From: Octopus bimaculoides
Lineage: Eukaryota
DNA: 63,818 nt
Reading direction: 5' to 3'
Assembly: GCF_001194135.2 (NCBI RefSeq)
Contig: NC_068985.1
Span: forward strand, 109,835,224-109,899,041
Part shown: piece after piece, positions 40,921 to 58,601 of the stretch
Layout: the number at the start of each line of letters is the position of its first letter
How positions within the stretch are numbered: position 1 is the first letter of the stretch
Made by a program: the position numbers and the translations under genes
The notes under the pieces: model-generated
What the model was told of the DNA's origin: nothing
Databases searched by the model: none
The model's input: only the letters and a program-made list of their open reading frames with translations

Positions 40921-41103
40921 GTCCATAAACACATTTGATGGATGCTTCATTCCAGACTGTCTTGTCCGGACACTGCATAAGAAACAAAAGTCCGTGACTG
41001 CACTGGTAGAACTGTGAGATCGATTGAAACTTCGGGTAGTAACTGTTCGGTTGGCAGGGTATACACTGAGTGTTGTTAGTGTCAAATACACACAAGGGTG
41101 TGG
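40921..41103 (-). CDS. Module exon 5 (CBM14-like)
   Basis: Acceptor ttcttttcatctcacag, donor gtaagt, 183 nt, phase 1-1. (T)TPLCVFDTNNTQCIPCQPNSYYPKFQSISQFYQCSHGLLFLMQCPDKTVWNEASIKCVYG. Confidence 0.93.
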
Positions 41104-42037
41104 CTGTGAGATGAAAAGAAAAGAAAATGAAATTGATGAAATATTTCCGTATTTTCCGACATACAAATCGACGTAGAACATAGGTACTATGTAAATATTC
41201 GTTCAAATATTGTCACTATCTTTCCAAACCATATTGCATTTCACATGGAATTTTGGATTCCTAGGAGCTGTCTTTGGTCTGTAAGTCGACTTCCCTCGTT
41301 TGGCTTTAAATTTTGTTTTGAAAAAGTTGCTTTGTATGCCGGAAAATAAGATAATCTGTTTTGTTATGACATGTGTTATGGAAAGGCTTACACTGAAAGG
41401 CTTACATTGAAGTTTATGAACTTAGGAGTAATAAAGACCGAGGTTGAACTTATTGAATTTTAGTTTATAAATAAAAGGCTCACAAATTTTGCAAATAAAT
41501 GTTCTGGTGATATACAGCTATTGCCCCACTATCAATTCTAGATAGAGAAAACTTGTATAATACAGTATAAGCTATGGGTTATTATTCGACTGTTATTGCT
41601 AAATAATCATAATGTTGCATAGCAATCTCTTGGTTGGTTTCATTCTTCATTATCCTGAAAATCTTCCTCGGATATTAAAATTGCTTCAGTGTACTATATG
41701 TTGCAGTTATCATCTCTCTATTTTATTTTATCGATCTATTCAGATCATTTTAATCCTTGGTACAAACAGATGAATATGCTGCGCTTGCGGATAGTTAAAT
41801 GTGTTATATAGATGCTGACGATGATTGCAACAAGAGCCGAAACTTATATAAAACTGTGTTTTTCTTTTACTGTTCACGAACATATTGTAAATGCATTGTT
41901 TATACTAGGCGTAACATGCCGTGTTCGTTAATATATCTATAGATATGTTCAACAGTACATGAGAGTAATAGAATGAAACACTATGAATACAGTAATTTAA
42001 TATTAAATCTCGTTGCGAAGGAAGTGTAAAATATGTA

Positions 42038-42265
42038 TTGGGTTGTCCGGAAAGTTCGTGCTGATTTATAGTAGCTTACCTTTCGACTTATTTGCCATGG
42101 AACCACCTAAATTCTGGAAAGAGGGTATTTTCAATTTAAAGGAAAGATGGAGACGCATTGTGCAACAAAATAGTTCATATTTGGTTGATTAAAAATGTAT
42201 TGGCAAGTATTTATTGACCTTTCTCTTTCTTTTTAAAATCGGCACCAACTTTCTGGACAACCCGA
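42038..42265 (+). mobile_element. Mariner-derived MITE
   Basis: About 30-nt imperfect TIRs (ttgggttgtccggaaagttcgtgctgattt / aaatcggcaccaactttctggacaacccga) flanked by TA. Retains the transposase C-terminus MEPPKFWKEGIFNLKERWRRIVQQNSSYLVD*. Confidence 0.85.
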
Positions 42266-42813
42266 TAAATATGCCTATCGACTTAGTTTAGCCACTAATA
42301 TCTGTAGGTTTATAAGCAATATGTTCGCGGATAGTTAAGGAGGGTGCACAGCTGCTGTTGGAACTCCAAACAGAGGTGAAATGTGCAGCATCAAAAGATG
42401 TCCTTTCTTCTTCTATGCATGCGTATTGTGTATATAGATGTAATGTTCAAAATAAATTTCAACATGCAATGTTGGCTAATAAGCCTATAGAAATGTTCTA
42501 TAGTAAATTATAGTAGTGAAACGAAAAACTGATAACACAACAACAATTATAATTTCACATAAAATACGCTGAAATGTGTTTAGAAATTGTTATTTGTAAT
42601 TCAATTTAACGCGTGAAAGAGTTAAGCTTTACGAAATTTAATTTAACCAGTGAAAAAGTTATGCTTTCTGATATTTATCCTTAAATCATTTACATACTAT
42701 AAAACCAAACCACGTCTACACTAACATATTCGTTTTCTTTCGGGTTTTTTTTATGTATGTATGTATGTATGTATGTATGTATGTATGTATGTATAGAAAA
42801 TAATGTTACCTAC

Positions 42814-42876
42814 TTGTTGGATCAATTGGTTCATAGATAGAGAGAGGTCTTTGAGAAAAAGTCATGTTGTAGACAC
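42814..42876 (-). CDS. Linker exon 4
   Basis: Acceptor gcttttctcctgcag, donor gtaggt, 63 nt, phase 1-1. (G)VYNMTFSQRPLSIYEPIDPT; EPIDPT matches EPINPN of linker 2. Confidence 0.87.
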
Positions 42877-54800: not shown

Positions 54801-55409
54801 CTGTAAAAATTAAAGATATCTCATGATGTCGTCAATTGAATGCTAAAGTTGAAAAGAGTAATTACGATATTAAGATATCTCGGTAATAAAAGATATCCGA
54901 TACATTATTTAGTATGTTACAAATAAGAACTAAACGGTTTATAAAGTGCCGCTAACACTAAGCTGTATGCATTCTTCAGGCAGATTGTATTCAGGAATCT
55001 ACTTGCCTCTTGTATATGTATAACTAACATCTTAAACCTGCAACTATTAATGTTTAAACCATGCTATCAATAATTGTAACCCAATTAAACCATAATATAA
55101 TATACATACATACTATAATCACAATAAATATCTAAGAATTGTTCTGTTAACATAAATGTAGAGTTATTACACTGGGAAAGACAATATAGCCACAGGTGAA
55201 ATGTATTTGAGCATAGTAGTAATGTCTTGTCTAACAAGGATTAAATATCACAGGAATATTCTTTTCTACTCTTAACACAAAGCTCGAATATCACAGGAAT
55301 ATTAGAAATAACATCATTTTTAACACGTATGATAGTTAATACATTGTCTACTGCCATTTGAGCTACATTAATACAGTCAGTGTTAATACGAGAACATAAT
55401 GTTTCATAC

Positions 55410-55478
55410 CATTCGGATTGATGGCGTCCATTCCATGTGATCCATTGTAGAAATTCGTGTAATTGAACGTGTCACCTT
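55410..55478 (-). CDS. Linker exon 1 of the tandem-module gene
   Basis: Acceptor aattttatttcag, donor gtatga, 69 nt, phase 1-1. (E)GDTFNYTNFYNGSHGMDAINPN. Not in the ORF track. Confidence 0.85.
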
Positions 55479-58418
55479 CTGAAATAAAATTAATTTCCGA
55501 AAATGTTGTTGACCCAGCGTTATGTCATATACATACATACATACATACATACATACATACATATACAGCACGTATCGTGTGTAAACTCAACTTAGTTGTT
55601 TTGAAAGCGTATGTATAATTACAGATAATTCCTAACATTCAATATTCATTCAGTGCAGATTTCGAATATTCCTGACACATAAATAAATTTCTCGGACTGT
55701 CGCAGAGACCCAAATTTGTGAGGGAAATATAAAGTGGAATATTTTTCTATGTCAGAAGATGATTGGTAATCATTGTGTAGATTGTCATGGCAGGATTGAA
55801 AATCAAAGACGAACTGGGGCAAGATTTTAGTGCGGATTCTATATTCTCCAAAAATTACCGTTTCTACCATTCTACGGTTCATTTATGAGTTATAAAGCTG
55901 AGAAATGGAGGGATGGTGTTAATCGATTATATCGACTTCCATTGCATAATTGGTATTTTATTTTGTAGAACTCAAAGTGATATAAGAGTAAATTGACCTG
56001 GGTGGGATTTGAACCTCGAACGTAAAAAATAAGTTTAAATATCGCAAGTATTTTCTCCAACGCTTTGTCGATGCTGCGAATCTACCTTTCGAAGTTAGGA
56101 ACTACGGTTCCTAATTAAAAATTTTTTTCTACAAAGAACTCGACTGCTACATTTTTATCGACCTCGAAAGGATGAAATGCAAAGCCAACTTCGGCGGAAT
56201 TTGAATTCAGAACGTAAAAACGGACGAAATACCGCCTGTGCCAACGATTCTGTCAAATCGCCACCTTTACGGCCCTTAACAATAGGTTCTTATTGAGGTT
56301 CAAAACCAGAATTCTGAGATGATGGGATTTTTCGATTACATAAAGGTCAGTACTTAACTGACGAAGTCATTAGCATCACTGAACAAAATGCTTAATGGTA
56401 TTTCCTCCGGCTTTACATTCTGAGTTCAAAATTCTTCCGAGGTCGATTTGCTCATCATCCTTTCGAGATTGGTAAAATAATTACCAGTTGAATACTGGGG
56501 GCCGATATAATTGACTAACACCTTTCTCCAAACTTGCTTGCTTTGTGCCAAAATTTGAAACCGATATTTATTGCACTGTTATGTTTTATAGTCTAAAGAT
56601 TTGTTAATAAATGAGTTCGAGTTCTTAAATACCGTTGATGTATTTTTATTATGTTTAAACATCAACTCAGTGTGTATGTGCGTATGTGCGTATGTGCGTG
56701 TTTGTGTGTTTGTGTGTGTGTATACATATACATATACATAAACACACACACACACATATATATATATATATATATATATGTGTGTGTGTGTGTGTGTGTG
56801 TGTGTGTGTGTATATATATGTATATATATATATATGTATATATATATATATACATATATATATATGCACGTGGTGTTTCATACATAGTGATGAATGCAGT
56901 GTGTCTTTATTTTTCTTAGAAGAGAAGAATCAGTTGTTCTAACAGTTGCAATGTTTTCTAGATTAGTGACGTCAGTAGTCAATACGAATGATAATATTAA
57001 GAGCTTAAACCTATGCTAGCAGCGGGGTATTGTTAATGAAAGGTTGAGTACGGAGAATTATACAGATCTACGTTGTTTTCGGAACAAGTAATCGAATACG
57101 GTTTTTAATGTGGCATTCTGAACACGATAAGAAAAAAGGAAGAATGATAGTTCGTACACAGTTACACATTTTACTAATTCCAATAAACAGGATCCACAAT
57201 ATTTTCTGTAGATGAGATAAAATGTTGACACAACGCGTCGGTAAAGATTGTGGTTGTAACTTGATAAATATACATTTGCTAAACTTTAGGGTAAACATTT
57301 AGGATTTTTTTCTTTTCATTCGGCCTAGACAATTTGCTTGCGTAAATGTGACACCGTTCTTAATTTGTCAGGAATATTCTAATGTGTTACACATTTATTC
57401 AAAGTTAAAATATTATCTGGCCTTTAAGAAAATGGCATCATCTTAGGGATACAGTTTCGATTGCTTTGTGGATATGATGTCATCATAATAGAACAGAAAT
57501 GGTGAGACCTAGCATCTGCCAGGTCTCACCATTCTGAAAGATTTTGTAGTGGGTTATTGATACATAAATAGTAAAAGCAAACTATTATATACAGTCATCG
57601 TGTTTTCATTGTATTAGGATATTGACATAAAATATCCACACACAAGAATCTTAAGGCGGCGAGATGCCACAATGCTTAGCGACATTTCTTCCGGTTTTTT
57701 TACGTTCTGTGTTCAAGTCCTGCCTCACAACTCTGCCTTACATTCACTCGGTGTCGATAAAATAAAGTACTTGTCGAGACTGGGGACGATGTAGAAACAA
57801 TTATTTTTGCAACATCAGATAAACGGTTTGTTTCACAAACATAGATATTATTTCCCGATATACATACACATACAAACGGCTGATGTTTATTTCATCTTCA
57901 TGGGTTCACTTCTACACGCGATGCTCATCACAGATTTATTTTGTATTTCACAACAGATAGTAAATGATTTACAACACATGCATGTATATACTTCCATTAA
58001 AGTATGTCTCACGACAGAGGTACATTATATATCTATAATAGCTTCAAAATTTCGCCACAAGGGCAACAGTTTGTGGGGGAGGAGAAGAGTCGATTATATC
58101 GACCCCAACGGTCAACTGGTACTTATTTTTAATGATACTAAAAGGATGAATGGCAAAGTCGACCTCGGCGGAATTTGAATACAGAACGTAAAGACGGACG
58201 AAATACCGCTAAGCATTTCGCTCGGCGTGCTAGCTATCCTGCCAGCTCGCCACCTTATTTATATCTATAATGATGTATATCACGAGAGAAGTGCGTTATA
58301 CTTCTATAAGACAGAAACACATCATATATTTATTTATTTATTTATGTGTTTCAGCCAAGTGGCTGCGGTCATGCTGGTGCACTACCGTGAAAAAAAACTG
58401 CTAAATATTTTACCTTAC

Positions 58419-58601
58419 CTTCGTATATACATCGTAGTGTTTCTCCATGCCAGATTGTACTTTCTGGGCATTGCATTAGAAACAAGATGCCGTGACTACA
58501 TTGGTAAAACTCGGCAATTGACTCTGCTTTCGGGTAATAACTGCCTTTTTCACAGGCTTCACATTCTGTGTTGTTGACTTCATAGATGCACAGGTTTGTT
58601 G
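58419..58601 (-). CDS. Module exon 1 of a tandem chitin-binding-like (CBM14/ChtBD2-type) protein
   Basis: Acceptor gtcttctctatag, donor gtaagg, 183 nt, phase 1-1. TNLCIYEVNNTECEACEKGSYYPKAESIAEFYQCSHGILFLMQCPESTIWHGETLRCIYE. Confidence 0.93.

Follow-up and report, generated by a model that had tools for sequence, protein, structure and literature searches.

The 63,818-bp stretch of the Octopus bimaculoides genome analysed here (from contig NC_068985.1; henceforth the window) carries on its minus strand the closing part of a large gene whose product is built from tandem CBM14 (peritrophin-A) modules of the kind found in chitin-binding proteins. Protein-level comparison points with high confidence, for gene structure and domain identity taken jointly, to the window containing the 3' third of one gene of 1350-1929 codons, the orthologue of O. 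sinensis LOC118763360, and to each repeated exon encoding a CBM14 domain with a modified set of disulfide-forming Cys residues. An initial annotation made from the DNA alone had presented the region as a hidden gene of about 400 codons. Neither part of that description holds, as the codons belong to the much larger gene, and all five module exons are already contained in RefSeq and UniProt models, XP_052824062.1 and XP_014781817.1 (the latter being A0A0L8GEB6). The locus is an already catalogued, uncharacterised member of the CBM14-repeat class with a cephalopod-type disulfide embellishment.

In a six-frame translation of the window, which has a G+C content of 37% and 15 runs of N, the strict pattern C-x8-C-x2-C-x17-C-x9-C-x12-C is matched five times, always on the minus strand, against no occurrence in 200 shuffled windows. 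These are the five 183-nucleotide (nt) exons of identical phase singled out by the initial annotation, and both the shuffling and the exon boundaries bear that observation out: a pyrimidine tract and AG stand before each exon and GTAAG after it, the first 2 nt of the exon finish a codon, and its last nt opens another (phase 1-1). The finer motifs are likewise as then described, with N-N-T, YYP, F(Y/F)QCS-x-G and CP-x2-T-x-W all present in modules 1, 2, 3 and 5, which are 55-67% identical to one another; the divergent module 4 has only 23% identity to module 1 and is without N-N-T, and it keeps every Cys. A profile built from the five modules detected no further copies in the window, and an Rfam scan of the window gave no matches. 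One symmetrical 183-nt phase 1-1 exon per module is what growth by exon duplication would be expected to give. Among modules 1, 2, 3 and 5 the nonsynonymous divergence (dN) is 0.21-0.34 and the synonymous divergence (dS) amounts to 1.8 or more, or is saturated; the intron flanks of the module exons, taken as 100 nt on either side, are unrelated to one another. Because dN lies far below dS and the flanking introns have nothing in common, these are old coding exons maintained by selection.

An exhaustive HMMER profile search of proteins returned 1177 matches, two of them far above the rest: XP_036358737.1, the uncharacterized protein LOC118763360 isoform X50 of Octopus sinensis (1350 amino acids [aa], with 11 full-length modules), and GAB1598772.1, a partial hypothetical protein of Argonauta hians (1315 aa, 7 modules). 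Longer isoforms of the O. sinensis protein have 1929-1941 aa. The coding part of the window amounts to about 451 codons over 34678-58601 of the minus strand, and its 451-residue product is collinear with aa 886-1350 of the O. sinensis protein at 95.3% identity and with aa 852-1315 of the Argonauta protein at 76.2%, all of its Cys residues being kept in both. Twelve exons map in order and on one strand to the O. sinensis interval, leaving a single 14-aa hole at a gap of 770 N. Four of these exons (49549-49590, 45403-45480, 39419-39505 and 34678-34706) were located by mapping the orthologous protein onto the window. The four linkers proposed at the outset become five readable linker exons between the modules, which together with the modules make 414 codons, and the coding sequence continues beyond the last module to a stop codon at 34678. 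On the upstream side, where the gene begins far outside the window, mapping the protein to 58602-63818 revealed no recognisable upstream exon of the orthologue; these exons lie beyond the window or in the gaps 60337-60487 and 61310-61489. A candidate signal-peptide first exon at 59916-59964 (MKAFHCIVISTLAIMH) was rejected, as module 1 of the window corresponds to the seventh of 11 in the orthologue and has coding exons before it.

The N gaps in the array (43328-43815, 45903-46315, 48142-48151 and 52913-53682) all fall between exons and none within one, and across the four the proteins of O. sinensis and Argonauta and the exact RefSeq splice run collinear with the window in exon order, strand and frame, so that the scaffold can be taken as continuous for the present purpose. 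The segment missing at the 770-N gap, O. sinensis aa 1030-1043 (RSQVWLLTDTETGV), is conserved in Argonauta and corresponds to a 42-nt phase 1-1 exon, for which a fuzzy search along the entire minus strand gave no match in the readable window. By this comparison the gap 52913-53682 probably hides one such 42-nt phase 1-1 exon, with an expected product of about SQVWLLTDTETGV. The linkers at 55410-55478, 52334-52408 and 42814-42876 share a conserved C-terminal motif, (P/A)I(N/D)P(N/T). The (E)PI(N/D)P(N/T) motif is also seen before several of the upstream modules in the O. sinensis protein. Another recurrent feature is a Trp placed exactly 8 residues after the last Cys in 6 of the 11 orthologue modules (in the contexts SRW, GIW, PLW, QVW, RLW and RYW). 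In the window, the codons for this Trp sit in separate short exons, 49549-49590 (42 nt) and 39419-39505 (87 nt), and also in the exon presumed to lie in the gap 52913-53682. These segments might form an amphipathic helix or might take the place of profile positions 48-53, the C-terminal portion of CBM14 that the module lacks.

Two O. bimaculoides RefSeq proteins fall into the 90% cluster of the O. sinensis protein, and both are exact splices of the window. XP_052824062.1, of 160 aa and named "chondroitin proteoglycan 2-like" in RefSeq, begins at an intronic ATG (58641) upstream of module 1, spans module 1, the first linker and module 2, and ends by intron read-through. XP_014781817.1 (LOC106877430), of 296 aa and called "Chitin-binding type-2 domain-containing protein" in UniProt, runs from an internal Met of the linker 52334-52408 to the true stop; its locus, on chromosome CM046605.1 of GCA_001194135.2 at about 109.86-109.90 Mb, is 100% identical to the window. 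A third O. bimaculoides model, 2056 residues long, stops near window position 59151, some 0.5 kb upstream of XP_052824062.1. Because the whole array sits in one collinear protein in both O. sinensis and Argonauta, the O. bimaculoides models of 2056, 160 and 296 aa are apparently three parts of a single gene. A word-index search with the five concatenated modules, which gave two weak insect-type matches, had suggested an unannotated gene. That search was insensitive, missing XP_052824062.1, XP_014781817.1 and XP_036358737.1 despite long exact shared stretches; the HMMER search and the clusters found the annotated proteins.

Two other accounts of the locus have to be set against a single large gene. 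Under one, the current annotation would be right and the 160-aa and 296-aa models would be independent small genes of 2-3 modules each, separate from the 2056-aa gene. This account has in its favour that the O. bimaculoides assembly is indeed annotated with separate models. However, the one model has an intronic start and a read-through end and the other starts at an internal Met of a linker exon, neither has a signal peptide, the junctions are all phase 1-1 and continue the upstream frame, and the split between the models coincides exactly with the 770-N gap, at which one conserved exon has no readable counterpart. Together with the collinearity of the undivided O. sinensis and Argonauta proteins with the window, these features make two free-standing genes very improbable. 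Under the other account the exons would be duplicates in decay (a pseudogene or an array of dead exons) or else a chance pattern. Nothing specific supports this beyond the abundance of microsatellites and gaps in the region, and it is already contradicted by the shuffled windows (0 matches in 200 against 5 observed), by exons that are all open and have consensus splice sites, by dN values far below dS, and by the 95% (O. sinensis) and 76% (Argonauta) identity with every Cys retained; we regard it as more improbable still. We hence retain the single gene, the readable features of which are collected in Table 1.

Table 1. Exons of the CBM14-array gene, and the assembly gap interrupting it, in window coordinates
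Feature	Positions	Strand	Length	Remarks
Module exon 1 (module 7 of 11 in the O. sinensis orthologue)	58419-58601	-	183 nt	Phase 1-1; variant CBM14; 95% identity to XP_036358737.1 aa 884-945
Linker exon	55410-55478	-	69 nt	Phase 1-1; product ends AINPN; exact part of XP_052824062.1
Module exon 2 (module 8)	54618-54800	-	183 nt	Phase 1-1
Assembly gap	52913-53682		770 N	Intron between module 2 and the next linker; coincides with RefSeq model split
Linker exon	52334-52408	-	75 nt	Phase 1-1; product ends EPINPN; XP_014781817.1 begins here at internal Met
Module exon 3 (module 9)	50552-50734	-	183 nt	Phase 1-1
Mini-exon	49549-49590	-	42 nt	Phase 1-1; encodes TRLWRLAAIEIKK; in XP_014781817.1; top splice score of its intron; 100% identity to XP_036358737.1 aa 1131-1143
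Linker exon	45403-45480	-	78 nt	Phase 1-1; 96% identity to O. sinensis protein
Module exon 4 (module 10)	44219-44401	-	183 nt	Phase 1-1; divergent, same Cys spacing
Linker exon	42814-42876	-	63 nt	Phase 1-1; product ends EPIDPT
Module exon 5 (module 11, last)	40921-41103	-	183 nt	Phase 1-1
Post-module exon	39419-39505	-	87 nt	Encodes ERYWFAFVVKTIKQSKIPGSLREILHIT; 93% identity to O. sinensis protein
Last coding exon	34678-34706	-		Encodes (N)STSRVKIA, then TAG stop at 34678-34680; splice matches XP_014781817.1 exactly

The CBM14-like character of the module, as originally proposed, is supported by profile scores, by matches to solved domains and by the predicted fold. In the HMMER comparison with Pfam PF01607 that the initial annotation had recommended, modules 1-5 score 36.7, 35.6, 29.5, 28.2 and 36.8 bits, all above the gathering cut-off of 22.1; the match covers positions 1 to 46/47 of the 53 of the CBM_14 profile and leaves the extra Cys pair outside. 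Against solved structures, the module profile finds the CBM14 domains of human chitotriosidase (CHIT1), Trichuris chitinase and Der p 23/Der f 23. AlphaFold models of the module have a mean predicted local distance difference test (pLDDT) value of 83.8 when built with 5 sequences and of 94.4 with 14, the N-terminal block reaching 91 in the latter. When these predicted models were compared with the PDB by Foldseek, the first 11-13 matches were all CBM14 domains (probability 0.98-1.00) and the matches below them were noise. For the better model, the root mean square deviation was 1.0-3.4 Å over 30-53 columns, with CHIT1 the best at 1.3 Å over 44 residues; the other matches of CBM14 fold are Der p 23, Avr4, Aplysia EHEP, Blo t 12, Der f 23 and tachycitin, of which Blo t 12 was an outlier in the first run (5.6 Å over 63 columns). 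The predicted module is the distorted beta-sandwich shared with the solved CBM14 domains, and on the profiles and models together we assign it, with the high confidence expressed above, to CBM14. Residues 7-28 of the module (e.g., 58516-58581) also draw sub-threshold Pfam matches to TNFR_ELAPOR1_6th and Ephrin_rec_like (E 0.004-0.6); these may be due to chance or to a shared C-x2-C-x2-G-x-Y hairpin motif and are not taken as membership.

The register of the Cys residues was obtained from an hhalign profile-profile alignment with 22 canonical six-Cys domains taken from the matches (probability 98.8%, E 1.3e-16). Module residues C16, C34, C44 and C57 align with canonical C1, C3, C4 and C5, respectively, residue 28 (Ile in module 1) occupies the position of C2, and Y59 that of the conserved Trp; the position of C6 is beyond the module and has no Cys, and residues 1-14, with C4 and C13, fall outside the CBM14 profile. 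The alignment agrees with the earlier reading in which the last four Cys are the canonical core, the classic second and sixth are absent and an N-terminal pair is added. C16, C34, C44 and C57 are invariant in 14 aligned modules, and the two extra Cys of the 14-residue N-terminal extension stand on either side of an N-x-S/T sequon, at which the module may be glycosylated. In canonical CBM14 domains the pairing is C1-C3, C2-C6 and C4-C5 (10.1101/2023.06.04.543649), and the core disulfides of CHIT1 are C420-C440 and C450-C463 (PMC4844120). By its register, the octopus module is predicted to keep the core disulfides, C16-C34 (C1-C3) and C44-C57 (C4-C5). As C2 and C6 are both absent, one whole disulfide (C2-C6) has been lost, and two N-terminal Cys have been gained. 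C4 and C13 are probably bonded to each other, because a Cys at position -3 relative to C1 is accompanied by another farther upstream (in 62 of 62 octopod and 11 of 13 other domains) and because beta-bridges at residues 3, 5 and 14 flank the two in the 94.4-pLDDT model as read by DSSP.

We surveyed the rarity of this arrangement in 1028 CBM14 domains anchored in the 150 best matches, 965 of them non-octopod. Most of the latter (758 of 965) have C2 and no N-terminal CxxC, 194 have neither, and 13 (about 1%) have the N-terminal CxxC, 7 of these being also without C2. C2 is in all absent from 201 of the 965 (21%). On these counts, the loss of C2 is ordinary and only the N-terminal Cys pair rare, and the module is not the strikingly non-canonical one that the earlier description had implied. 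The module does not have the classical six-Cys register with its C2-C6 bond, yet this bond is not required for membership of CBM14, because C2 is missing from CHIT1, from Der p 23 and from 21% of the other domains surveyed.

The full-length architecture was read from the O. sinensis orthologue. By inspection, it begins with a signal-peptide-like stretch, MPFSQTGTKTIFGWSALILLCFLSQTAHA, followed by QQ; a short Cys-containing region comes next, and then eleven modules that share one Cys spacing. Modules 4 and 5 are separated by a Gly-rich region of 247 aa (36% Gly) with GGSQGTGGATGG-like repeats, which is far longer in the larger O. sinensis isoforms and in Argonauta. PI(D/N)P is a frequent ending of the linkers, and the protein closes with a 41-residue tail without a transmembrane segment. 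Pfam recognises in it CBM_14 only, in 11 stretches (224 bits). The idea of a secreted, multivalent protein fits this orthologue, with its signal-peptide-like N-terminus and its 11 modules, and would extend through it to the O. bimaculoides gene.

Several parallels are offered by known systems. With CBM14 domains at large (PF01607) the octopus module shares, besides profile score and predicted fold, C1, C3, C4 and C5 and the aromatic-Pro, F-Y-x-C, G and C-P motifs; it differs in having neither C2 nor C6, in matching only positions 1-47 of the 53 in the profile and in its N-terminal Cys-pair extension. CHIT1, to which the sequence match has an E of about 6e-6, is also without canonical C2 and has two core disulfides, but its extra pair, C460-C462, is near the C-terminus whereas that of the octopus module is N-terminal, its Trp465 is Tyr59 in the module, and it has a single such domain on a GH18 catalytic domain in contrast to 11 tandem modules and no catalytic domain. 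Der p 23 (PDB 4ZCE), a top fold match, likewise is without C2-C6, and its CPGNTRWNE resembles CPDKTVWNE of module 5; it is, however, a single small domain without the N-terminal Cys pair. In overall design, there is a likeness to the insect peritrophins and mucins and to the Caenorhabditis elegans chondroitin proteoglycan CPG-2, which combine a signal peptide, many tandem CBM14 domains and low-complexity or glycosylated spacers; most of the 150 best database matches have this architecture. These differ from the octopus protein in their canonical six-Cys module and in Ser/Thr/Pro-rich, mucin-like spacers in place of the Gly-rich GGSQGTGGATGG type. The likeness to CPG-2 and to peritrophins in function is a matter of general background, and CPG-2 is the source of the RefSeq name "chondroitin proteoglycan 2-like."

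The variant module is not confined to this gene. A0A0L8GFF3, an O. bimaculoides paralogue, combines two EGF_CA domains with 3 modules of identical Cys spacing, which Pfam recognises as CBM_14. The Argonauta counterpart of this paralogue (Ahia01_000154800) is only four locus tags away from the Argonauta orthologue of the present gene (Ahia01_000154400), a proximity suggesting that genes with the variant module are clustered locally. Further, two predicted proteins, designated P0047 and P0067, combine 2-3 modules of this spacing with a signal peptide, a Ser/Thr-rich stalk, a transmembrane segment and a CD164/MGC-24-like tail (a weak Pfam match). P0067, with 2 modules that Pfam likewise assigns to CBM_14, is encoded on transcript-sized contigs of three sequencing runs, of which SRR3011300 is a whole-animal transcriptome of the cuttlefish Sepia pharaonis; P0047 comes from JGI sample 3300019054. 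The variant module is thus present and transcribed in both octopods and a cuttlefish. A0A0L8GFF3 and P0067 have the same Cys spacing but different architectures, EGF-containing and membrane-anchored, respectively; they are paralogous uses of the module and not orthologues of this gene.

Secreted proteins with many CBM14 domains and flexible spacers are the standard design of peritrophic and eggshell chitin-matrix proteins, and octopods make chitinous structures. Taking the domain and its surroundings together, we consider that the locus is probably best explained overall as a large secreted CBM14-array gene with chitin-binding modules; chitin binding, judged by analogy, would be the most likely function of the module, at a confidence somewhat short of firm. 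We propose that the secreted protein would bind several chitin chains at once through its many modules, contacts being made by the presumably exposed aromatic side chains of Y21/Y22-P23, F31-Y32, W50 and Y59, and that chitin might thus be cross-linked or coated in the extracellular matrix, with the Gly-rich region serving as a flexible spacer. Indeed, the exposed aromatics of CHIT1, Y428-P429, F437/Y438 and W465, correspond to Y22-P23, F31-Y32 and Y59 of the module, and W50 is invariant in 14 of 14 aligned modules.

Certain observations nonetheless weigh against this proposal. The position equivalent to Trp465 is Tyr in modules 1, 2, 3 and 5, as the initial annotation had stated and the alignments confirm, and His in module 4, in no case Trp. 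Der p 23, which is one of the two nearest structural matches, and the molluscan EHEP have the CBM14 fold and are reported not to bind chitin, the Aplysia EHEP using its three peritrophin-A domains to bind phlorotannin (10.1101/2023.06.04.543649). In addition, only the O. sinensis and Argonauta proteins show the signal peptide, the remaining six modules and the Gly-rich region, and literature searches on the locus, its accessions and octopus chitin-binding, sucker and eggcase proteins returned nothing on this gene; papers on Pif/BMSP and the argonaut eggcase concern other CBM14 proteins. One reading of such points is that the gene and the fold are as described here and the ligand is something other than chitin (another glycan, a polyphenol or a protein), the product being a mucin-like or matrix glycoprotein unrelated to chitin. 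The functional plurality of the fold speaks for this, EHEP and Der p 23 both being among the best fold matches, as do the replacement of the canonical Trp by Tyr and the glycosylatable N-terminal hairpin, which is absent from characterised chitin binders. On the other side, the CHIT1-type aromatic positions are occupied in the module and W50 does not vary, the top fold match of the better model is the CHIT1 chitin-binding domain itself, and chitinous structures are a known part of octopod anatomy. We judge a ligand other than chitin to be rather unlikely, though it is the likeliest of the alternatives, and continue to favour the chitin-binding array.

A wider and more tentative scenario would unite these proteins in a coleoid CBM14 subfamily, in which the C2-C6 bond was replaced by an N-terminal, N-glycosylated disulfide hairpin carried in a fixed 183-nt phase 1-1 exon. 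Such a module might have been deployed in at least three architectures, a secreted 11-module Gly-rich giant, an EGF-containing protein and a membrane-anchored mucin-like protein, and the giant might be a protein, so far undescribed, that organises chitin in a cephalopod structure such as the sucker lining, beak, radula, stylet or gut cuticle. We regard the scenario as possible and no firmer than that.

Elsewhere in the window, an open reading frame (ORF) on the plus strand at 28169-28473, immediately beyond the gap 28014-28168, codes for zinc fingers of the C2H2 type (Pfam zf-C2H2, E 5.5e-11) and is probably part or a fragment of a neighbouring zinc-finger gene. A short interspersed repeat occurs on both strands (e.g., at 2594-2995, 13545-14276, 17502-17633, 19916-20266 and 45845-45900), with a translation like AVGLNPEPCG(C/W)E. 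This repeat and dense microsatellites (TG/CA, TATC-type and poly-Tyr-like runs) account for most of the long ORFs of the window.

The main practical yield of the analysis is a corrected gene model for O. bimaculoides, as the gene would be miscounted wherever the present models are used as they are in expression or proteomics work. In terms of the family, the disulfide variant is another instance in which only C1-C3 and C4-C5 of CBM14 are indispensable, a point already implied by CHIT1, Der p 23, Avr4 and tachycitin. As an uncharacterised protein conserved in octopods, the product is a reasonable candidate for organising chitin in the hard or lining tissues of cephalopods, which would make it relevant to biomaterials.

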